NCBI GenBank assembly: GCA_020536535.1
Contig: JAHLWZ010000922.1
Span: 1-47,104, forward strand
Source of the DNA: Pelomyxa schiedti
Taxonomy: Eukaryota; Protista; Evosea
DNA length: 47,104 bases
Direction: 5' to 3'
This document shows positions 5,349-38,800 of this stretch, one piece after another. The translations under genes were made by a program, and so were the position numbers. Under the pieces are notes generated by a model. That model saw only the letters and a list, made by a program, of their open reading frames with translations, did no database searches and had not been told where the DNA came from. Positions within the stretch are counted from its first letter, which is position 1; each line of letters starts with the position of its first letter.

Positions 5349-7273
5349 ATGGCGCATATAATCGATGACGAGCCACTACGAGTACAGTTCCCGGTGGACG
5401 TGCAACTTGTACGCCGGATCTTACGTGTTCCTCAAGGGATGAGTTGGCAGGAACTTATTGACGCAATGCCTCTTTTCGTGTCGTGACTTCGTCTTTTTTT
5501 CCCCTTCGCTCTCGTTCTCGCAACAAGCACAACCTTGATTTGATCGTTTTTTGACTCACAACAAACCAACTCGTCTTGTTCTTACTGGAAAACTGCAGCA
5601 CCTCCATCACTGTCTTACAAGGAAAGAAGGGCTGGGCGTTCGCCACCTTCTCCACACCGGGCGCAGCGTGGCAGGCGGATCTTCATGGAATTGACATAGC
5701 AACGCCACACAACGGACCGCACCGTTTGGGTTTCGCGCAACTGGCGCCGGCATACACACAGAACGGGGAACCAGCAGAGTTTACCCTTCAGGGGGGTTTA
5801 TACAGTGTCATTGGAGTTCCTCGCACCGCATCGCGCGACGATGTGGCTGATCACTTCAACTCCGTATGCAACCTATCTCCACACCCGCATCCGTGCGTGT
5901 TGTTGTCCCGAGCGATGGATGGATTGCGGTTTGTGAAATTGATGCATCCACCACTCAAAGTCTCGGACTGGAGAGTGGGCGGCAATAAGATTTGGGCCCT
6001 GCCAGCTGGTCTATACTACACCAGACGCCCCCCCCTACTGTACACTCGAACTCAGCAACTAGCTCCTCCTCCTCCTCCGCCTCCATCCAGTCAGCCGGCT
6101 CCGCTCCCTATGCCCGATACTCATACGCAGCAACTAGCACCAGCACCACCATGTCACCCAGCACCGCAGCCCCTTCACTCACTTCAGCAGTCAATACAAC
6201 TGCCACAACAACATCAACAGCAGCAACAACAAATATCACAACCAGAAGCGCCAATTCCGGCACAAGAACAGGAAGAAACCCAATCAGTCCAAATACAATC
6301 ACAACAGATACAAACCCAAGCGCAGGCAGAAGCTCAACGTCAAACAAACTCGCCAATACTACCAAATCAAGACTTGTCAATTCAACCACTGCAAATGCAA
6401 ACACAGACAACAGAAATCCTATCTGATGTGCATTCGAAGTCACCAGTACCACCAAATCAAGAGGTTCTTCAAATCCAACCTCCACAAACACAAGTCCAAT
6501 CACAACTTCAAATAAACGGGCAACCAGAGCCACACCAAACTGAACAAGATGCAACAACAAGAGACTCTCTAATGCTTAACTTAGAAGAAGAGGCTGAAGC
6601 GGAAGCTCCGCTCCCTATGCCCGATACTCATACGCAGCAACTAGCACCAGCACCACCATGTCACCCAGCACCGCAGCCCCTTCACTTACTTCAAGACTCG
6701 TCAATTCAACCACCGCAAATTCATACAGCAGAAAGCTTATCTGATACACAATCGAAGTCACCAGTACAACCAAATCAAGAAGTTCTTCAAATCCAACCTC
6801 CACAAACACAAGTCCAACCACAACTTCCAATACACATGCAACCAGAGCCACACCAAACTGAACAAGATGCAACAACAAGAGATTCTTTAATGTGGAACTT
6901 ACCAGAAGAAGAGGCCGAAGCGGAAGCCCCGCTCCCGATGTCAGACAATTACTTGCTTGAGCCACGCAGGCCAACCCAAGGCAGTGCAAATGTAGTAACA
7001 GCACGACCCACAGTTGACGCTCCACAACACCCCCGCTCCCCAACACCACCCCTTTGTTCGCCCTCGCCCTCCCCCCCGCCGTCGCCCCTGCCCCCGCCCT
7101 CACCCTCACCCTCTCCATCACCCCCCTCCTCACCTGAGGTCCCTCAGCCGCGCTGCGGGTGCACCGCGTCCCCGTGCTGTAAAACGAACAGATGCGGATG
7201 CAGAAGGAATCATCGTTCTTGTACGGCGAACTGTCAGTGCCACGAGTCTAACAATAAATGCTGGAATACATAG
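5349..7273 (+). CDS. Spliced protein: RRM-like N-terminal module, duplicated Q/P-rich linker, C-terminal tesmin/TSO1-like CXC cysteine cluster
   Basis: ATG at 5349 (MAHIIDDEPLRVQF...RVPQGMSWQELIDAM), intron to about 5598, then ORF 5576-7273. It has an RNP1-like KGWAFATF and ends RCGCTASPCCKTNRCGCRRNHRSCTANCQC...CWN. Confidence 0.75.
6098..6941 (+). repeat. Intragenic tandem duplication in the Q/P linker
   Basis: APLPMPDTHTQQLAPAPPCHPAPQPLH...PNQEVLQIQPPQTQVQ...PEPHQTEQDATTRDSLM...EEEAEAEAPLPM occurs twice (about 6098-6604 and 6605-6941). Confidence 0.9.
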
Positions 7274-8404
7274 TGCACCCAAACCCAAATCCATATCACC
7301 CACCACCCAAAAATGGGTCTCCTTGAATTTGTCAACAGCTTTGGTGTTTCTCAGAACAGTAGTTCTTTTCTTTTTGAATCGGGTCACCGGACAACGACTA
7401 CGAAATGACGTCTCTGTTGGAACACGACTGGGCGTTGGTGCAGGACGAGGGTGCGGTGGCCAAGTTCGGCGTCGTCGGCGCCGTCCAAGGACTCGCCGTT
7501 GACAGAGTCGTACGACACCGTCACGGCGTCAGAGTTCAATCCTGAGGGTCAATCAGCAGCACCCACGGGAAAACAAGGATGTACTTACTGTTGAAACAAG
7601 CCAAAAGGTGTCTGGGATTAGTTATTCTTAAAATCTCTTCCTGTTATTGCCACCCATACTCACATCACTCAACAAAACTAAACTATGCAAGGTGTCAGCC
7701 TCCTGACTGTAAGGCGCCGTCCAATAGAACAAGTAGAAGAGGTCTCCACCATCATGACAACATTTGTGGGCAGGACCACACTGTAATGGCACAGAGCTAC
7801 GCTTCGCTGCTACCCATTTGTGTTATACACCAGATTATTATGAAGGCCTGATTTATCGGGGTGTGGAATTACAGTGTTTGGTCCTGCTCACTGTTAAATG
7901 CATCCCTGCATTCAAAGCCGAGCTGGTTGGATTGTATTCCCACCTCTGGAATCAGTGCTCAGTGTCCCCATAGGAGCCACCATGTTTATTAAATTACTGG
8001 TGGGTAGACAAAAAGTGAATTGAGGAGTTCCTGAGTCTTTTCTTTTTCAAACAAAGGGATAGTGGAGCGGAATGTTGTTTGGGTGGCTTGTTGGCTGTGA
8101 ATTGATGATAACATGGATGGTTGGTAATCATTATTGGTTGCCTGTGGTATGATGGAATGGCTCAGAGCACATGGGGGATCCACACTGTACCTGAAAAAAG
8201 GTTAGTTAAAGGTAGTGAGAATATGAGGATACTTTTTATGAGCCAAGCCGGCGACCATTAAAGCAACAGAAAGCCAGCGGCACTGAAAAAAAAGATCAGT
8301 GCCAATAAAAGTTGGAATTTTGAAAGCAAACCTAATAATTTCTGCCACGTTCCAACTTTGTAATTCATCCAGATAATCATGATGATCCATTTATCGCTTT
8401 GGTA

Positions 8405-8917
8405 TCGCAGCCCGCCCAGAATGGGCGTGCACATCGTGAGTGCGTGAGTACTCACGGGCAAGAGCTGGCTATATTATATTCAAGTGTATTTGTTGCTGGA
8501 ATAACATTGTCGGGGCCTTCGCAGCCCGCCCAGAATGGGCGTGCACATCGTGAGCGCGTGAGCACTCACGGGCAAGAGCTGGCTATATTATAGTTAAGTG
8601 TATTTGTTGCTGGCTGGAATACCATTATCGAGGCCTCGAGTATTAATTCATCATCCCAGATAATTATCGCAGCCCGCCCAGAATGGGCGTGCACATCGTG
8701 AGCGCTTGAGCACTCACGGGCAAGAGCTGGCTATGCAATCAGTATTTGAAATATAGTACCAGTACCTATGATATGACGGAGACCTAAAGTTGTTGTTCTT
8801 GTTGTTGGAATTAGGATTAATCAGTAAATGCAATCAGTCCCATAATTCGCGGCCCGCCCAGAATGGGCGTGCACATCGTGAGCCGGGGAAACTGCGTGGC
8901 TCACGGGCCAGAGCCGT
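8405..8917 (+). repeat. Array of four ~68-nt structured repeats with variable spacers (copy A)
   Basis: tcgcagcccgcccagaatgggcgtgcacatcgtgag..ctcacgggcaagagctggctat at 8405, 8519 and 8667, with a variant unit at 8847. Confidence 0.95.
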
Positions 8918-8994
8918 ACCTAAGTAAGTTGTGTATCCGGAGGAGCTATACATACAGTAAACGCAGCTTGCGGCGAGAGTCTCTGCTATAGTAG

Positions 8995-9160
8995 CGGAGA
9001 GGGTGAACGTTGAGGCCCAAGACAGCGGGCAGGCCGTGCCGTATTCCTCTCAGCCCCCGGAGGGGTTCGTGCGGGCAGTCGAAAGACAGTGCAGTGATCT
9101 GCCAGGTCAGGCCCGTTGCTGTCCAGGCTGTCTTGGGGGCGCCCACCCGCCCGTCGGTGT
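8995..9160 (+). ncRNA. Putative structured RNA of unknown class (long stem with multibranch head)
   Basis: cccaagacagc (9016-9026) pairs with gctgtcttggg (9127-9137). There is an outer gggtg/caccc pair and internal hairpins agcccc-cgga-ggggtt, gtc-GAAA-gac and tgatct-gcc-aggtca. G-U pairs favour the + strand, and a U-rich tail follows. The core is essentially identical in copy B. Confidence 0.5.
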
Positions 9161-10743
9161 TGTTGTTGTTGCTTTGTTGTTTGTTATTTTTTATGACTTT
9201 GTTATTCTTTCTTATCACTTTTACCAATGATGACTGGGAGATCTTCTCATTGTTTTGCGCGGCGATTTTCACCAATTGGTTCCCAGGAGCAATTGGATTT
9301 CCTGCGAATTTGGACCATCATTGGGGGATCTTCATGCCTCTCTGACTGGCACCGGTGCCCTGCATGTTACTGGATCATAGAAAGGACAGAAAATCAGGGT
9401 GGTTGAGATCGGATGCATTTTTTCGATGATACTACGAAGGAGCTTTACAACCGGTTCCTGGACAAACAGCACCACAACACCACATGTATGTCTGGATCTT
9501 GCATCTCAATTACACTACTCATGTCTTTCTCCCGAGATCCCTCTTCGTTATTTTGAGTGACGGCGTAACATGCGAAGAGCATGGTGCATGTGAAAAGCAT
9601 GGTGTGGTTCTTCTTCTTATTATTGGTTTTGGGGCATGCATCTGATGCAAATAGTCACCTCAGCTGGGAACTGGACGTGGAGGTCCCCCTCTGTTTGTGG
9701 CGCAAATATTTCACAGTATCGAGCTTCAGCCCTCACATTATGTTCTGAATAACTCAATTGTAGTTGCACTTAACTAGCTCATAACTGTCACTGTCAAGTT
9801 AGACTGTCATAGTATTGCCAACAGGCGCGGAAATTAATGCCTTTGGTCACGCAGTGACTGGAACTTCAGAGTAAGGTTTGCATTCTCTGGGAAGACTCCC
9901 TTGAGCGTAGTGGCCCCACAAGTGACTGTGTCATGAAATCTGGTGGTGATCCAGGTTTATACTACGATGAGTCAGGATTGTGAGCATGAGGCTGTGTTCC
10001 AAGGTTAGTATGTGTGGGTAACTATCTAACTAATTTATTGTCCCTTGCATGCCTTAAGAACGCAGAACCTGACTTCATTGGGCTCGATGGACTTATTTCT
10101 TTCTTTGATCACCCTGAGTATGGAATCAATCTTTTCTACAGGTCTCAACCCATCACTAGACTAAAAGTACTCTGCCAGTACACCTGCTACTGCTGGAAAC
10201 ACACTGTTGAGTGTTATTCGAATCTCTGTCTCTCAACACAGATGATTTCTTCCCTTGTTCAGCTATAAAAGAAATAGGGGTGAACCAGATTTAGTAACAC
10301 TACGCAGAAGCTTTCAAAGACTACTGGACTGTTTTCCCTATTTTACTCCATGTCTAATAATGAACCTTATTCAGGCTATATTTACCAGTCCCGGCATTCA
10401 AAAGAGGTCTAGTACAGTATTACATACACTACTATACTCCTCGAGTGAAGTTAAACTTCTTGGTCGTCTTGATCCCATGGCTCGCAGTTTCTGTTTTCCA
10501 GGTACCTAGCATTGCATAAAATAGACTCTTTTTGTCAACAGGGATTGTCTTTCAGTGCCTACCTCACCAATAACAAAAAAGCAATTGTATGACTACAGTA
10601 ATGCCTCTTTTGGTAATAACCATACCATGAGAGACACCAGTTACTCTGCCCTGAGGGTATTTAGCCAAGGAAACACAGTACCCAATCCTTTTTTTTTTCC
10701 CAACTTGGTGTTCCGAAAGCTGTTAAAAAAAACCGCACCTCTA

Positions 10744-17082: not shown

Positions 17083-20000
17083 ATGGATGAAGAAGAAAGA
17101 TCTGACGACAGTGCCACGGGAAAGAGAAGGAACAAAGGCCACAACAAGCACTCGCGCAGTGGCCGCAGCGACACACGCAGGCACCACTACGAAAGCAGTC
17201 ACGGCGGATTGTCGACGTACAGTGATTCCTCACCGTTGCGAGAAGAGTCACCTTCTTGCGAACGCGACGGGAGGCACGATGATTCGCAGTCCAGGCTGCA
17301 CGTCGAAGTAACCACGACGCATACGATTGTTCACGATGACGGCGAGACGCCACCGCCAAACGAAATCAGCTCTGCGAAAGCAGAATCTCCCTCCCCTGAG
17401 TCCCTTGCAGTGCAACAACCCTCACCTTCCGAGGAATGTTCAACGCACCAAGTGCTTGCATGTGCCACTGCCCCTCCGATTGTTGTTGTCGTGCCCCCAC
17501 AGCCATCAACTAAATCGCTGCCTCCTTCGGCAGCACCCCCTCCCATACCAGTTGCAGCTACAAGTTCACGGACAGCGACACCTGCCACTGTTACCAGTGT
17601 AGCTAGGCCGCAGTCACTCAAGGCGTTTACCTTAACAATCCCAATGTCACCCATCTCTGATCAGTCATCTTCCACGGTTTCACCAGAGCGATTCAGTGCT
17701 TTTATTTCAGGCCCGCTGACGGATTTTGTGACAAGAACGTTTGGCACTGCTCTGGTTAGCATATACTTATAGTGATGCCTTGAAATAACAAAAAAGGAAG
17801 GCTTTTGACAAGAGCAATTCTGCTACTTTAAACCAAGAGTACAGTGCACTTGAAAAACAATGCAGTGAAATGCTGAAAGAATTTTTCCAGCCCGAGTTGC
17901 AGGTTGCCCACGAACAGGAGCAACTTGTGCAAAGACAGAATCACCGCCAAGCTGTTGTAGAGGAATTGTATACTACTGGTAAAAGCCACTTCTTTTTTTG
18001 TGTGTTCTTCACGTTTTTGCAGAAGAGGATTATTCAAAATCCTTGCACATAATGATGGAGGTATCTGTCTTATTTCAGTCCAAATTGATTGCTAACTGTC
18101 ACGAAGCTATGGCAACCAGAGATTACCAAGTCTGGCCTCTTGCCTCCAGCAGTATTCCCCTCTTCACATTTTTCCAATTTACATTTCGATAGGATATTAA
18201 AACGATATTTGGCAACATTGTGCAACTGGACTTATTAGCCTCGGAATTGCTGGAGGACTTCAGAACTGCCAAAAGTATGTCTTTGTACTTGTTTATGTCT
18301 CTGATATGAGGAGACAAGCCGATGAGTGACCAGAGGATTGGTGAGAGTTTTAAGAAAAGGGTAAGTGGCTACTGAATACCACGGAGCTCAGTCTAAGTCA
18401 TAACTTTCATGAAAGATACCATGGATCAAACTGTACATTGAATATGCACTTAACAGAGATCAAGCAAATGAAATCCTAAACTCTGCCCGTAAAAATCACA
18501 AATTTGTAGCCCTGCTTGAGGTAGGAAATGAAACCTTGTGACACTTCCTTAAAAAACCCTGTAGAGGATGCGACAACACCCACAGATCGGGAAGCACGAT
18601 TTACCAGATTTTCTTATTAAGCCGACACAACGAATAGTCAAATACCCTTTACTCTTGAGAGATCTCATAAAAGACACCGACACTGGTAACACAGCCTTCT
18701 CCAAGAGTGTTTCTTTATTTACTTGAACAGACCACCAAGACTACAATGACTTGCTCCTTGCTGAAGCTGAAATGAAAAAAGTTCTTATTAGCATCAATTC
18801 ATCAAAAAGAAATCAACTCACGGTTTCACTCTTGAGCCAGCTTCAACCAAATCTAACATGGTCCAATTTGGTAACTCCTCTCAAAGTTGTATGATACTAA
18901 AGGAACCAATATTAGGCTTATGACCTTGTTGCTTCTAAAGCTCAACTCATTTTTGAAAGTAAAGTGAAGTGCTATGTGTCCAAAAACGGTGAAGAAAGAA
19001 AGGTGAAGCAAGTCTTAATAATAACAGTATTTCTCTTTTACCCTAATACCCAGGCTAATACTGGCTATTTATTTGACTTTTTCATTTTGGTATGTCATCA
19101 TCGCTCCGGCAAATGGCAGGAAGTTGGCTTGATGCTTTTAGCCGATTGTGTAATAAATACCGGAGTCTCCTGTATGAAAAGGAATAAAACCGTAAATCCG
19201 CTCTTATGTGAGGTGTAGGTGCAGATTCATACAGGTTTGCGGTTCTCCACAAAACAAAGCAGGAAAAACTTGTTTTTGAATCACAAGATCAATATCTAAA
19301 CCAACTCTGGATAACAAATATAAATGACGCAATTAAAGTCATCCCAGCCGAAAAGGTTGAGTTCTTAACATGTTTGAAGTCTGATGCACACTAGGTTCTT
19401 GTGCCTAAAGACCAAATCAAACGAGATTCCATGACGCCCCAACTACCGTCACTGCCACAACTCACTCCATCACCATCACCACCACTGCTACAGCATCAGG
19501 TCGAGTCACAAATGCCAAGTCAAGAAGTTCAACAAGGTGAACAGGGACAGAACTCCAGCTCAACATCTTCAAAAACTTCGCAATCTTCAAGTGGCTCTAA
19601 AGATTTACGACCAAGCTCAGATGACTCTGTAAAAAAAAAGCGAAGCTGGGGAATCTTTACATTTCGTGGAAAGAAGGCAGATGAAGAAAGTGAAAGGGAC
19701 TGTGAACCTAACAGTGACGAACCAAGCAGCCAAGAAAAAGATATTGTGGGCAATCAAGTTGAAGTAACCCATTTTTCCTTAGTGGAATACTAACTCACCT
19801 TAGTCTGTTCCTCCATCATCTCCTGAAAATGATATACCGCCTCCCAATGAAGTGCAAAAAGGCTCGACTGAGGGGGAGAAAAATTCCAATTCTGGTACAT
19901 CTGAGAACTCAGTAACAGGTCTCCCAGCATATGTTGATGATATAAAGCCGCCGCCGCCAGAGCAACAGCCTTCAGCAGGCGCAGAAATACCCATTCCACC

Positions 20001-29059: not shown

Positions 29060-31108
29060 ATGCATCAGTGTCTCCTTGTGCGATGGGTGGACAACACCAC
29101 TAAGAGACGCAACGTCGAACGAGAGTCTCGGAGCCGAGCCAATTTCGCCCAAGTCCAGAGGGACCTTCTGAAGTCCATCATGGAGCGGAGCTGCGCCAAT
29201 GGCGGTTGCGAGTTCGCTCGCAAGCACAAAATCATGGGTCTCGGCGCGGGCTCCTCCGGCGTGTACACAATGGAGCAATTCCGGCAAAGGGTGCCGCTGT
29301 GCACGTATTCAGATATCGCGGCTGAGGTTGACATGGTTGCACAGACTGGTTGCAAGTTTCCCAGGTGCACTGATCCAATTGAGTTCCTCACTTCCACAAC
29401 CGGTATGCTTTTCCGGTACTGAGTGGATTTAGTTGGAACTTGTTTCGTTTTCCTGTTGGTTTCTTGTGCCTGAATACCAGTCTGATGTGTAATTTTTCCT
29501 TCCTCATTTGTTTAGGCACAACCGGATCACAGAGACTTGTTCCTCTAACTCGGATAGACATGGAGAAGATGCGGAGTTACTTGAATACGTGCATTATAAT
29601 CGCTTTTTCCTGTCGATCAACACCCAACAAGGTGTCAAAAAGAGTCCTGGAGGTATCACACAGGGTGCACTTGGCCCAATGTTCTTTCTCAGGTCAAAAA
29701 AGTGGCTCCCTTTTGTTTTTGTATCTCCCTTTGAGGTCTACCAGGTATAACTTGACTTTTCATAATACATCCATGGCAATAGAGATATTTTTCTTTTAGG
29801 CTGCGGAATGGGTGGAACCAGCAATGTATCTTCATGCATTGTGGGGAATGAGAAAATACTCCGAACTCTCCCAGATTTCCGTTCCTTTTTCTGCGATGCT
29901 GCATTCCTTTTTCACAGTGATGATCCGGGACTGGGATGACCTCATATATGACGTGGAGCACGGAACCCTGCATCGCAAGGTTCCTCCTGTGCAGCTTCGA
30001 CACGAGCCAATGCCACATTACGCTTCTAGGATACTTGAAGCGGTATCCAGAGTGCCACCTGGAAAACCCGGCTGGGTAAAATCGGTGTTTCCAAAGTTGA
30101 ACTTGGTGGTATCCAACGTCATAAACCCTTCTCTGAGTTATGTATCTGACCTCAAGTTATGGCTTGGAGATGACGTGCAATTCCGGTCCTTGGTATATGG
30201 AGCATCCGAGTGTATCATCGCAATGCAAACTCCAGAGGCCACCATCGCTGACCTGAGGCGTGACATTCAGCCAAACTCGGCGTTTTTTGAATTCGTACCA
30301 TTGGACGAGGAAGAGTCCAAGAAGTGCACAGAGACTGGTGGAGCCATGCTGCCACAAGAGGCCATTGTTGGGCACATTTATGAGGTTGCTTTGACAAACT
30401 TCTCTGGGTTGTGGAGGTATCGAATGGGAGATGCAGTTCAGGTTGTTGGATTCAAGGGTCAATGCCCAGAGGTATTCGCCTTCCTCCGGACTCACATTTC
30501 CTTTTACTCAAACAATGCAGATCAAATTCGCTTACAGAGTTGGTTCGGTTCTGAACATCTTCGGAGAGAACATCAACGAGATTCACCTGCGCAAAATAAT
30601 GACAGATGTGTTTGGTGATAACATTGTCGATTTCACTGTCTTCCAGGACGATATTGAAAGCCGCTATCACGTTTACGTCGAGCCGAGGTCCCCCCTTTCT
30701 CCTGAAACTGTATGTGTCTCCCCTGTCATCCAACTTCCCACCATTCCCATTCTCTTTCTCACCTTCCCATTATGTTATCATTATCATCTCCATTCCCAAT
30801 TCCCAGGCACACCCACGCTCTCCCATAATACTCTCTTGCTCACTCTACTATCAAACCACACCGCCAACAAGGTTTCGACACTGAGCGAGGCCGTTGACGC
30901 GGCGATCAGGCAGACGGTGTATAACTACCGGCTGTATCCCTTCAAGAAGCCCCTTGTGTGTGTTGTGAGGCCGGGGACCTTCGCGTCCCTGACGTCGCAC
31001 ATTCAAAGGAGGACGCTGAGCCAGGCCAAGGTGCCCATCAAGGTCCTCAACCCCGAACACATCAAGATCCTCGTCGACAACACGCTGGAGAGGTGTTGCG
31101 CTCATTGA
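29060..31108 (+). CDS. GH3-family acyl acid-amido synthetase (ANL superfamily)
   Basis: FRQRVPLCTYSDI, P-loop TSTTGTTGSQRLVP, YGASEC, FFEFVP, YEVALTNFSGLWRYRMGDAVQVVGF, LNIFGENINE, VVRPGTF and QAKVP. The start codon is uncertain. Confidence 0.9.
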
Positions 31109-34099: not shown

Positions 34100-34591
34100 A
34101 GAATCCCGCTATCATTGAACTACAGTTTTTTCACAAACAGAAACACGTGAACTCAAACAACCACTTCTGCTGGCTGCCAGCATTCCTTATGAGAGTGGTG
34201 TGTTGTGATGGGTTTGCATCACTCAGTGTTTATTTAAACAGAAAATTTGATGAGGAAAAAGAGAATTGTGTTTCTGTGTTTTAGAACAAAGGGATAGTGG
34301 AGCGGAATGTTGTTTGGGTGGCTTGTTGGCTGTGAACTGATGATAACCTGGATGGTTGGTAATCATTATTGGTTGCCTGTGGTATGATGGCGACTGTACC
34401 TGAAGAAAGGTTATTTAAAGGCGGTCAGGATCCTACATCATATGAGGTGAGGATACTTTTTATGAAGCCAAGCCAGCTTGCTGGAGAACTGAAAAAATGA
34501 TCAGTGCCAATAAAAGTTGGAATTTTGAAAGCAAACCTAATAATTTCTGCCAAGTTCCAACTTTGTAATTCATCCATTTATCGCTTTGGTA

Positions 34592-35142
34592 TCGCAGCCC
34601 GCCCAGAATGGGCGTGCACATCGTGAGCACGTGAGCACTCACGGGCAAGAGCTGGCTATATTATAGTTAAGTGTATTGAGGCCTCGAGTATCAATTCATC
34701 ATCCCAGATAATTATCGCAGCCCGCCCAGAATGGGCGTGCACATCGTGAGCGCTTGAGCACTCACGGGCAAGAGCTGGCTATTATGTATTAATTGTTGGA
34801 ATTAGGGGCATTCTAGGAAAGACCAGCTATTGAGCTGATAAAATAAACTGTGCTAAGAATCATTAGTGCCAATAAAAGTTAGAATTTTAAAGGCAAACGT
34901 TTCGCAGCCCGCCCAGAATGGGCGTGCACATCGTGAGCGCGTGAGCACTCACGGGCAAGAGCTGGCTATGCAATCAGTATTTGAAATATAGTACTAGTAC
35001 CTATGATATGATGGAGATCTAAAGTTGTTGTTGGAATTAGGATTAATCAGTAAATGCAATCAGTCCCATAATTCGCGGCCCGCCCAGAATGGGCGTGCAC
35101 ATCGTGAGCCGGGGAAACTGCGTGGCTCACGGGCCAGAGCCG
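34592..35142 (+). repeat. Array of four ~68-nt structured repeats with variable spacers (copy B)
   Basis: Units start at 34592, 34715 and 34902, with the variant unit at 35073. Confidence 0.95.
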
Positions 35143-35416
35143 GACCTAAGTAAGTTGCGCATCCGGAGGAGCTATACATACAGCAATACCAGTAGGTCTA
35201 AAGCATCAACAGTAAACGCAGCTCCAGTCCCATAATGCCCCCCCCAGCACCCGCCCACGCACCACACCACACCGCACTCCGCCTGATCACACGCTGAGGA
35301 TTGAGGCACTGTTGAAGGTGGCGTGGTTGTTGTTGTGGCGTCGTTGATGTGGCAGCGCCGGCCCCGGGGAATGCCCCCCGCTCGTCCACGCAGTGTGCAG
35401 CTGGTAGGAAATGAGC

Positions 35417-35585
35417 CGGAGAGGGTGAACGTTGAGGCCCAAGACAGCGGGCAGGCCGTGCCGTATTCCTCTCAGCCCCCGGAGGGGTTCGTGCGGGCAG
35501 TCGAAAGACAGTGCAGTGATCTGCCAGGTCAGGCCCGTTGCTGTCCAGGCTGTCTTGGGGGGCGCCCACCCCCGCGTCGGTGTTG
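35417..35585 (+). ncRNA. Putative structured RNA, second copy
   Basis: Identical to 8995-9139 apart from one extra G in the G-run. Stem 35438-35448 pairs with 35549-35559. Confidence 0.5.
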
Positions 35586-35845
35586 ATTTGTTGCTTTTGT
35601 TGCTTTGTTATTTTTTTATGACTTTGTTATTCTTTATTCCTTGACGATGACTGACTTCTCATTGTTGTGCGCGCCAATTGGTGAAACTTTTTTTCACCAA
35701 TTGGTTCCCAGGAGCAATTGGGTCTGACATTTTCCCGCGTGTGTTGCAGGCTGAATGCCATGACGGCTGTGGTAGAACAACGAAAACAAGCGAAGAAAGA
35801 CGACTTAGTTTTTTTCTCCTATTCGAACTCAGCAACAATCATGAA

Positions 35846-38800
35846 TCAAAACGGCCACTTCCAATTCCTCACTTCAGGCAAATCTTGTCCATTCTTGATG
35901 ATGTAGTTCTTGTGGTCAATGAGTTTACTCTTGAGCATTTCCTGTTGGGAAGAGGGGTGCTTAGGTTGCCGGAACGAAAGAAAAAGAACCGCGCACACAC
36001 ATAGACATAGGCACTGTTCTTGAGCTGCGGCAGACGGACAATGGCATCAGAGGCAAGAGTGTACCGATCAATCTGATTGAGCACGGCCATGTCGAAGGGA
36101 GTGGTTGTTGTGCCCTCTTCCTTGTAGCCTCTCACATGAAGGTTGGGGTGATTCTTGCGGCGATACGTGAGCCGGTGTATCAACCAAGGGTATCCATGGA
36201 ACACAAACACAATCGGCTTGTCAGTCGTGAACAGGAGGTCGAAATCCTTGTCGGCAAGACCATGTGGGTGCTCAACTGTGACAAAAGGGTAAGTGAGAAT
36301 TGTCAAGTGTGCGACAAAAGTTTACTTTGTGGTTGCAATGCCATCAGGTCAACAACGTTCACGAACCGGATGCGGATTTCTGGGAAATTCGACCGGAGAA
36401 TTTCGGTTGCTGCAAGGGCTTCCAGAGTTGGAACATCTCCACAGCTCGCCATCACCAAATCAGGCTCTGTTCCCTGATTAAGAAGTGGGCTGTTGTTCAG
36501 GTCTTGTGAAGGAGTTCTCGTGTGTGAAAGAAATACCTGGTCATTTGAAGCCCAATCCCATATTCCCAATCCTTTGGTGCAATGCCGAACTGCGTTGTCC
36601 ATGTCCAGAAACTGCAGTGATGGCTGCTTTCCTGCTATGATCAAATTCACGTAGTGCCTGCCAACGGGTGTTGTTAGCCGCCATTCTTGGCTGCTGTATA
36701 CAATCCACTTCCACTTCCACTTACTTTGAACGAAGACAATGATCAACAGTTGTCAGCAGGCAGTTTGCATCAGGGGGGAGATAGATTCGAATGACTTCAG
36801 CTTTCTTGTTCACAACGTGGTCAATGAACCCAGGGTCCTGGTGACTGAAACCGTTGTGATCCTGCGTGGAAGAACAAGCGCGCGCTAATTGAGAGAAGGG
36901 ATATGTTGATAGTTGGGACGTACCTGCCTCCACACGTGAGAGGTCAACAGGTAGTTGAGTGATGGAATTGGCCTCCGCCAAGGAATTTTCTTTGAGACTT
37001 TGAGCCACTTTGCATGTTGATTGAACATAGAATCCACGAGATGGATGAAGGCTTCGTAGCATGAAAAAAGCCCATGCCGCCCAGTGAGAAGATAACCTGA
37101 AGGAAAGAAATAAGTGGGTTGGTTACCCGCGCCAATAGTACAAGTGCAAGTGAACACAAACCTTCCAGCCATCCTTCCAGTGTATGCTCACTCAGCATTT
37201 CCATCACACGGCCGGTTCGAGAGAGGTTTTCATCCACATCCAATCTGTTCGCCATCCACGCGCAATCAGTGACCTCAAAAAGGGCACTCAGACGATTTGA
37301 AGCCGTTTCATCAGGTCCAAAGATCCGCATGTTGGAGTGAGCAGCATTTAATTGCATTGTATCACGTAAAAACCCTGCTGCAATTCTCGTTGCTTCCGCT
37401 TCCGTCGTTCCTTTCATTGTGAATTAAATCAAGAAAGAAGAATTCCGTGGAGAGGAAAACCTGGATGAGGGACTGGAAACGAGTAATCCCTGAAATCTGG
37501 CAGCCGCAAATCAAAACTCAGTTTGCCGCCGTTTGCATGCGGATTGCTCCCCATTCTTCGTGCACCCCTTTTTTGGGTTTTACTTTTTAGAGCAATCAAT
37601 TCAATTGCACTCAGTACTTTGGGGCAAGAGCTTGCAGGGAGGAAAGAAGTGTCCCATTCGAGTCAAATAAGTCTTCAGGGTGGTAAGATTTCAGCCATTC
37701 CTGCGGGGCGGGGGGGGTACAATTCAATATTGCTATTATGCGTCCAGAAAAGGACACTTGCCTCAAGCAACATGAGATGTTCGGGGTTTGTACGAACTTC
37801 CTGAAGGGGAACTTGGTGTGACCTCCAGGTGTCTTCAATTTTTTTCCCTGGCGGTGCCTGTTAAATACAGCAAACATAGGCCGTGTGGATATTTTACCAT
37901 CAACTTCCTTCGGACCAGTCCAACCCTTGGGAGTTTTCAATATTATCATGGGCCACTTTTTTGGGGTGACTTAATTGGAAGTTTCCCAGAGGAAGTGAGG
38001 TGCTTACTTGCGGTCTTGTGTTGTTGTTAGCGGCTTCTCTGGATTGCCTTTGTATCTCTCGTATCTCTTTCACTACAACCTCAAGTGTGGCAGCCATGCA
38101 TTGATGCACATGTACGGGGTCATTCCTTGTAAATGCAACAACAAGGTGACAAGAATGAAAGAAGTGTAATTGAAAAATACCCTTCCACCCAATAGGTCTT
38201 GTAACCATATCCGTAGAAAAGGGCGTCCAACTCCGCATCAGGAATCCTTGCCAATACCGCGGGGTTTGCGATTTTATATCCATTCAGATGCAAAATAGGA
38301 AGCACAGTACCTTGAAGGGGAGAAATAAAAGGAGGGAGAGGGATTTTCAGAGCTTGCTACATGATGATGGAGTTACCATCACGTGCGGGATTCAGAAATT
38401 TGTTGGAGTGCCATGAGGTTGCCAGAGGTCCCGTTTCAGCTTCTCCGTCACCGACAACGCACACCACCAGCAAATCAGGGTTATCAAAGGCGGCGCCATA
38501 CGCATGTGAAACAGAATACCTTGTTGTTAGTCAAGAATTGAAACTAAGAGGCTGAGATGAGGGGTACCCAAGTTCGCCGCCTTCGTGTATGGATCCAGGA
38601 ACTTCTGCTGCAGTGTGGGAGGGAATACCTCCAGGGAAAGAAAACTGCTTGAAGAGCTTCCTCATTCCGTCCTTATCTCTGCTGACCGTGGCATAGTGGT
38701 CTGAATAAGATCCTTCCAGATAACTTAAGAGTGTTAATCAAACTCAGTTTTGGCACCACTTTCGTAGCGTACGTGTTGGAAACCATTGCAGGACCACCAT

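Follow-up and report, generated by a model that had tools for sequence, protein, structure and literature searches.

A CRISPR-like repeat array of Pelomyxa schiedti lies on the opposite strand, within a spliced and apparently non-coding gene

What is an array of near-identical palindromic repeats with differing spacers between them, much as in a CRISPR locus, doing in an amoeba? The window analysed here is the whole stretch of 47,104 nt (positions 1 to 47,104 of contig JAHLWZ010000922.1, assembly GCA_020536535.1), and it holds two such arrays. An earlier note, made from the sequence alone, had called them CRISPR-like and had read each unit, on the plus strand, as a three-way junction under selection for structure, as expected of tandem ribozymes, aptamers or processing signals in a polycistronic non-coding RNA. 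The array is a real structured repeat without earlier description, on the opposite strand and within a spliced gene; that observation is partly confirmed, and its interpretation partly supported.

The eight units lie where they had first been placed, four per array at two loci, starting at 8405, 8519, 8667 and 8847 in array 1 and at 34592, 34715, 34902 and 35073 in array 2. Six of the eight are A-type, 64 nt long and 95-100% identical, with variation confined to the tip of the long hairpin, where the changes are mostly C-to-T type transitions. The last unit of each array, in plus-strand order, is B-type: it is 73 nt long and differs from A-type by three substitutions and a replaced tip, and outside the tip only two sequence types occur among the units. 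Units are 64-71% GC. The spacers, correctly described as AT-rich, are 33% GC and measure 50-123 nt (about 45-120 nt by the first estimate). The units, called modules below, are as follows.

8405..8468, minus strand: module u1, A-type, 64 nt; two hairpins and a weak closing stem (predicted); starts at a TAG acceptor; in RNA contigs.
8519..8582, minus strand: module u2, A-type; its first minus-strand base is the RNA-verified exon start (joint 8582/8623, CT..AC, run X3).
8667..8730, minus strand: module u3, A-type; its exon runs on for a 44-nt tail, as far as the donor at 8622, giving exon 8730-8623 if the upstream intron is used.
8847..8919, minus strand: module u4, B-type, 73 nt; longer tip and compensated closing pair; first in transcript order; RNA contigs end at 8881.
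34592..34655, minus strand: module v1, A-type, gene copy 2; donor of the upstream intron lost by deletion.
34715..34778, minus strand: module v2, A-type, identical to u3; preceded by a candidate 45-nt intron, 34779-34823.
34902..34965, minus strand: module v3, A-type, identical to u2; preceded by a candidate intron, 34966-35000.
35073..35145, minus strand: module v4, B-type; preceded by a candidate intron, 35146-35181.

All genomic copies were collected, a check that had been asked for, by BLAST, two covariance models and a 2-mismatch pattern run against the assembly (52,367,397 bases, 5337 contigs). This gave 12 units, the eight in the window and four on another contig, C14; the covariance-model searches scored 150 of 2077 candidates, so strongly diverged copies could escape. 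The duplicated segment extends beyond the array to the whole gene of 1.25-1.8 kb (8039-9296 matches 34271-35721), and window positions 7913-9718 match C14 at 97%. Raw-data contigs confirm the second window copy, whose flank is the loose end at 8050 in run X1; in the same run, locus-2 alleles appear within the locus-1 context or haplotype. The C14 copy may be cell-specific or an amplification chimera, as the contigs from both DNA runs pass 7913 unbranched. Run X4 carries, at 8385-8496, a u2-type tip directly beside the leader, a combination absent from the assembled copies and so a further allele or copy. C14 also holds, at 17590-19130, a partial extra copy of the gene's 5′ block, with a 6-nt microhomology junction to the full copy; the joined pieces are followed by a 5′-truncated piggyBac-type transposase (DDE_Tnp_1_7) that lacks its terminal repeat.

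The strand was settled by RNA contigs (not reads) from two single-cell RNA-seq runs of one sample, of low depth and from a poly(A)-type library, in which small plus-strand RNA would therefore be invisible. These contigs span 8050-8881 and none covers 8882-9830, for which reason the 5′ third of the gene model is one that we infer. Three joints in them read CT..AC on the plus strand and are GT..AG introns of the minus strand, at 8283-8331, 8191-8232 and 8583-8622; the last sits within spacer 2, and its AG abuts unit 2. One contig, ending at 8496, runs on into reverse-oriented adapter sequence, which we take to be the reverse complement of the Smart-seq2 template-switch adapter, and this orientation places the RNA on the minus strand. 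The strand that had been folded at first was the plus strand; the RNA evidence is for a spliced minus-strand transcript. The P. schiedti genome paper cites Smart-seq2 and reports 7.4 introns per gene, 98% of them GT-AG (PMC8887013). On the minus strand each of the eight modules has TAG directly in front of it, in the same register (with two extra bases in B-type), and TAG acceptors with branch-like motifs occur in four otherwise unrelated intron sequences. Splicing of the array is incomplete, spacer 1 being retained in run X4 and spacer 3 in run X3. Three acceptors before modules have lost or shifted their own donors, and a second, donor-less acceptor lies near 8783 in the spacer before u3.

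The array is a tandemly repeated intron-plus-exon within a gene of about 1.2 kb that reads right to left on the minus strand, probably transcribed by RNA polymerase II; polymerase III units were rejected as a candidate, with no T-run terminators after the units. From 5′ to 3′ the model comprises a promoter-like end near 9290, a 145-nt core, an intron, four module-led exons and two further exons, of which the promoter, the first exon and the poly(A) site are putative.

8583..8622, minus strand: spliceosomal intron in spacer 2, 40 nt, GT..AG, RNA-verified.
8283..8331, minus strand: spliceosomal intron downstream of the array, 49 nt, GT..AG, RNA-verified in both RNA runs.
8191..8232, minus strand: spliceosomal intron, 42 nt, GT..AG, RNA-verified.
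8469..8505, minus strand: intron-like spacer 1, a paralogue of the verified intron with the homologous donor G changed; retained in run X4.
8731..8765, minus strand: candidate 35-nt intron before u3, with GT, branch-like CTGAT and TAG; retained in run X3.
8920..8955, minus strand: candidate 36-nt intron before u4, with donor GTATGT, branch-like CTTAC and TAG; outside the RNA contigs.
8995..9139, minus strand: GC-rich core, 145 nt, probable first exon; identical in both window copies; outside the RNA contigs.
9266..9296, no strand assigned: upstream end shared by both gene copies, putatively promoter-like, with two CCAAT/ATTGG palindromes.
7985..7990, minus strand: AATAAA, candidate poly(A) signal; RNA coverage stops about 60 nt short of it, at 8050.
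8044..8190, minus strand: last exon, common to both copies, from RNA contigs and copy comparison.
34229..35721, minus strand: whole gene copy 2, with AATAAA at 34234, the array, the core at 35417-35561 and CCAAT palindromes.

In both gene copies the two downstream introns (34400-34456 and 34489-34536 in copy 2) still run from GT to AG in spite of indels. Each copy also has an AATAAA about 60 nt past the last exon that they share, and CCAAT palindromes at its opposite end. Copy 2 carries a 200-nt extra block at 35222-35416. The core (8995-9139; 35417-35561) has an 11-bp closing helix, a folding z of only -1.2 to -1.4 and no Rfam match; its change G9015T is present in both DNA runs. From 9250 to 8953 the minus strand contains no ATG.

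Convergent plus-strand neighbours accompany both copies, the ORF at 5576-7273 for copy 1 and a plus-strand gene next to copy 2. The former is an intronless ORF of 565 aa with a possible RNA-binding N-terminus, a Cys-rich C-terminus and no Pfam match; it contains an internal duplication of ~320 nt, and several indels distinguish DNA run X1 at 7000-7640. On the minus strand, an intron-split phosphoketolase (XFP) gene, of a family known mostly from bacteria and fungi, occupies 35870-38290 and ends about 150 nt upstream of gene copy 2. A GH3-family (auxin-conjugating-like) gene, here in an amoeba, is found at 29812-31108 on the plus strand. Another neighbour is an ankyrin gene, whose paralogues carry Pelo_ names.

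The spliced RNA of about 1.2 kb has no credible reading frame and is apparently non-protein-coding. In any tested splice form no ORF through the array exceeds 87 codons, and none is common to both copies; for the repeated exon we found no frame shared by paralogues and no homologue or family, the spliced model being searched exon by exon. The database gene model P0015 (Pelo_14199/Pelo_258) starts within a candidate intron, reads the module in two frames and skips exon 8233-8282, which both RNA runs include. It has no homologue and no Pfam family, and its language-model score is like that of shuffled sequence; the annotated protein Pelo_14199 was judged spurious. An ancestral coding role of the repeated exon may be entertained because, in one frame of the minus strand, each of the three A-versus-B substitutions outside the tip is a synonymous change at a third position (chance about 0.04). 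The verified exon 8730-8623, of 108 nt, is open only in that frame; in copy 2, once past a single TAA, the frame reads on across two introns. Pairing is kept in the B-type tip even though this tip puts the frame out of register, and most modules are followed by stops.

Folding predictions give both hairpins, as first claimed, a pairing probability near 1 on either strand, and as predictions go they are solid. For the 4-bp closing stem the probability is 0.74-0.91 when an A-type unit is folded by itself, 0.18-0.33 for a B-type unit folded likewise and 0-0.5, mostly <0.3, in sequence context. Of the three-way junction that had been drawn for each unit, the hairpins therefore stand, and the junction itself is plausible, not established, because the stem that should close it pairs weakly both in context and when the B-type unit is taken alone. 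The replaced tip of the last unit does still pair: in a structure alignment across units 95.8% of cells are paired, versus 20-49% in slid controls. It is equally true that the closing stem changes on both sides at once in the last unit of each array, from CAGC/GCUG to CGGC/GCCG. Three pairs across the units are changed on both sides; the closing-stem change is a single event, since just two sequence types exist outside the tip, and no homologue was found in another species. Three random substitutions would include a compensatory pair with a chance of about 0.016, and the synonymous-frame signal is about as strong as this apparent covariation. For unit 2 the folding z is -3.2 (minus strand) and -2.2 (plus strand); among 112 windows of 63 nt from this contig, matched for GC, none has z <= -3. 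In five of six A-type units the tip variants give G-U wobbles when read on the minus strand; on the plus strand they are mismatches. They represent about three independent events. The GUGA hairpin loop in the original description exists only on the strand without sign of transcription, and reads UUGA in two of six A-type units. That structure rather than sequence is under selection was overstated, given the near-identity of A-type units and a covariation that comes from two types.

The fold is indeed unlike known families: Rfam gave no match at gathering score in the window and only chance matches at E up to 10 at both loci (permuted forms would escape), and a tRNA scan found none. Pattern scans of metagenomes, prokaryotic genomes and viral contigs returned only chance matches in coding DNA (<=25 bits versus 85-101 for true copies). 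Resemblances to SRP RNA, U1/U11, the TPP riboswitch, HDV, hammerhead, group II domain 5 and Dictyostelium DUSE were set aside, having no Rfam score behind them. Elsewhere in the genome there is an unrelated multicopy palindromic element of ~100 nt (about 15 or more matches). One arm of its long closing helix is rich in A and the other in T, and it also has an inner hairpin and a segment capped by GAAA; it has no Rfam match and may be MITE-like or a structured RNA.

Twister sister (RF02681), together with the TS-like 'lantern' ribozymes, is the closest ribozyme class. On the plus strand, GCACAU and GC(A/C)AG flanking the long hairpin match the L1 loop (GCUCA(U/A), GCNAG) at 9 of 10 positions, a score reached by 18 of 20,000 flank shuffles; the short strand G-C-N-A-G is present as GCAAG in A-type and GCCAG in B-type, and among the junction bases only A7, which is not conserved (it is C in OR4K15), varies. 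About ten ribozyme classes had been tried by eye before this match was picked, which puts the corrected chance near 1%; under looser rules, host DNA yields a 9-of-10 match about every 6.5 kb. Like that class, the units have a 6+5 nt internal loop and a permuted helix order, and their short hairpin resembles P5 of a natural three-way member (PMC5660989, PMC11620745). Unlike it, the long strand GCACAU has no A8-U61 pair, the highly conserved U61 being A in 12 of 12 copies. L1 is not flanked by two regular stems, P1 needing a 1-nt bulge and P2, which should have >=3 bp, consisting of one A-U pair ahead of the junction. The P4-like stem is open-ended, with SL4 and its GUGCAAG-type loop absent. Tandem ribozymes, as first suggested, thus fail on three features of the nearest class; by its defining features the units are no members, and there is a very slight chance that they might still work likewise.

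How far the modules are constrained can be judged from the copies. Among tandem copies the identity of A-type modules is 0.95-1.0, versus 0.34-0.63 for non-orthologous flanks (random 0.50), and deletions in exon tails stop repeatedly at the module edge. Between gene copies 1 and 2, the 346 nt of modules plus core contain 5 mismatches and are free of gaps, and the remaining 594 nt contain 34 mismatches and 18 gaps (p 0.001 for mismatches and 0.0003 for gaps; units alone, p 0.09 and 0.01). Selection on the module is likely from these comparisons; gene conversion can give an equal identity pattern once flanks have diverged.

Several explanations compete for these data. A repeat acting at the DNA level (enhancer-like, mobile-element subterminal repeats or a CRISPR-like memory array) would suit the dispersed copies with different flanks and the transposase after the C14 copy, but that transposase is truncated and has no terminal repeat at the junction, and other transposase copies come without an array. 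Intact relatives of its element (TTAA-CCCTT ends; C1150, C571, C1324 and C688) carry their own terminal repeat and no array, because of which a link between array and piggyBac element was rejected as incidental. Terminal inverted repeats and target-site duplications were not found at the array, and only 2-3 copies exist. CRISPR arrays belong to prokaryotic hosts with cas genes, and combine repeats of about 23-55 nt with unique spacers of near-constant length from foreign DNA; here the repeats are 64-73 nt, the spacers are mutually homologous and partly spliced introns, no cas domain was found among the ORFs scanned, and the host, the archamoeba Pelomyxa schiedti, is an intron-rich eukaryote, so the likeness first seen does not hold. 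The splicing data largely refute the DNA-level reading, which we consider highly improbable. It is quite unlikely that the transcript is instead a polycistronic precursor, from which the modules would be cut as small RNAs of ~65 nt, or would be intronic through the GUGAGU donor (leaving 13-nt micro-exons) as in a snoRNA host. Discrete, equal-sized, conserved modules within poorly conserved exons would fit this, as would the module GUGAG upstream of the three acceptors without own donor; against it, no joint at GUGAG occurs in the RNA contigs, the u3 tail joins u2 through an ordinary donor, and the stems are too short for miRNA. Guide roles for 18S were rejected: no unit has a C then a D box, C/D antisense matches to 18S are at chance level, the minus strand has no ACA/AGA tail, and neither strand gives an H/ACA or AGA-box pocket match of >=8 pairs in the 4563-nt 18S, the geometry also being unfit. 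Like snoRNA host genes and polycistronic snoRNA clusters, the locus has structured modules that are conserved inside a host that is short, spliced, non-coding and itself poorly conserved; unlike them, its modules are exonic in RNA contigs and have neither box motifs nor an 18S target. The 18S rRNA gene itself is 4563 nt long (C59:18787-23349), and the LSU gene seems absent from the assembly, save for an 80-nt match on C571. It is also very unlikely that the plus-strand unit is a circularly permuted twister-sister-like ribozyme, with P1 closed by the variable tip and P4 opened, that would cut between C and A at 8432/8433 and equivalents and, for example, end convergent read-through. Besides the features that fail and the lack of an Rfam match, there is no evidence of plus-strand RNA, and the module edges track minus-strand splice sites; a plus-strand tandem array of permuted, SL4-less ribozymes of this kind, with a variant catalytic loop and antisense to the spliced non-coding gene, is very doubtful.

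The locus could be a non-functional or decaying gene (an orphan protein gene or a chance transcript) with a duplicated exon, marked by stops, a frameshift and lost donors. Its modules would be alike through gene conversion, unequal crossing-over and GC-rich palindromes aiding homogenisation, and the apparent compensation would be a synonymous pair or palindrome-templated repair. The synonymous A-versus-B substitutions, the 108-nt exon open only in their frame, the read-through of that frame in copy 2, the C-to-T character of most A-type tip changes and the locus-2 alleles on the locus-1 haplotype all speak for this. Yet searches of the genome and of 1.84 billion representatives gave no homologue of the peptide, non-synonymous changes prevail in the A-type tips, and the B-type tip keeps pairing while shifting the frame. 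Deletions that halt at module edges, a folding z rarely matched on the contig, and the splice sites and AATAAA kept in the 3′ part of both copies despite indels count against it as well, and we hold decay to be rather unlikely. Our tentative preference, itself a possibility and not a firm conclusion, is for a long non-coding RNA whose exon-start modules serve as repeated docking sites for a protein or the spliceosome. It too meets objections: the RNA evidence is contigs from two low-depth runs of one sample, with the 5′ part outside them; gene conversion could keep the blocks identical without selection, as the locus-2 alleles in run X1 would suit; three pre-module introns with lost or shifted donors also fit decay; and the closing stem is not favoured in context. 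The earlier idea of a structured-module non-coding RNA survives as far as transcription and apparent lack of coding go, and falls short as an array of ribozymes.

If the docking-site explanation is right, the array would have been born by tandem duplication of an intron-plus-exon block, after which introns and exon tails would have drifted and reshuffled, and the first 64-73 nt of each exon would have stayed near-identical. The four modules might then offer repeated docking sites for an RNA-binding factor. The spliceosome is a candidate partner, as the module abuts the 3′ splice AG and holds a donor-like GUGAG(U/C). This consensus is found in all units, 13-15 nt into the exon, and its predicted unpaired probability is 0-0.1 in A-type. 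A donor-like site locked in a long hairpin could make splicing slow or incomplete, and slow, incomplete or switched splicing could in turn retain the RNA in the nucleus. Both the binding partner and the nuclear-retention role are speculative, the mechanism being proposed by analogy with Firre and with the chromatin retention that U1 motifs bring about (both taken up below).

Almost nothing has been described on long non-coding RNAs in Archamoebae, and our literature search for them found nothing. If the docking-site explanation holds, this would be a compact modular long non-coding RNA far from animals, each module tied base-for-base to a 3′ splice site and concealing a donor-like one. Should the plus-strand unit self-cleave, the sequence space of twister sister would widen to a eukaryotic tandem form; if the gene is decayed, exon duplications with short introns can mimic CRISPR-like arrays with apparent covariation.

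Among known systems, the locus falls with spliced long non-coding RNAs that have exonic local repeats: it is spliced, has no credible ORF and carries a locus-restricted repeat in several exons. In Firre, the exonic local repeat RRD binds hnRNPU and confers nuclear retention (PMC4820808). Like Firre, the Pelomyxa gene yields a spliced non-coding RNA with a locus-specific repeat in several exons that is rare elsewhere and possibly homogenised by non-allelic gene conversion (PMC4820808); unlike Firre, to which it has no sequence relation, it has a 64-73 nt module set at the acceptor, two strong predicted hairpins and introns of 35-50 nt. Repeated unused donor-like motifs in a non-coding transcript also recall the chromatin-retained long non-coding RNAs that depend on U1 motifs in mammalian cells (10.1101/310433), but in the A-type modules of P. 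schiedti the predicted pairing of the motif would hinder U1 binding.
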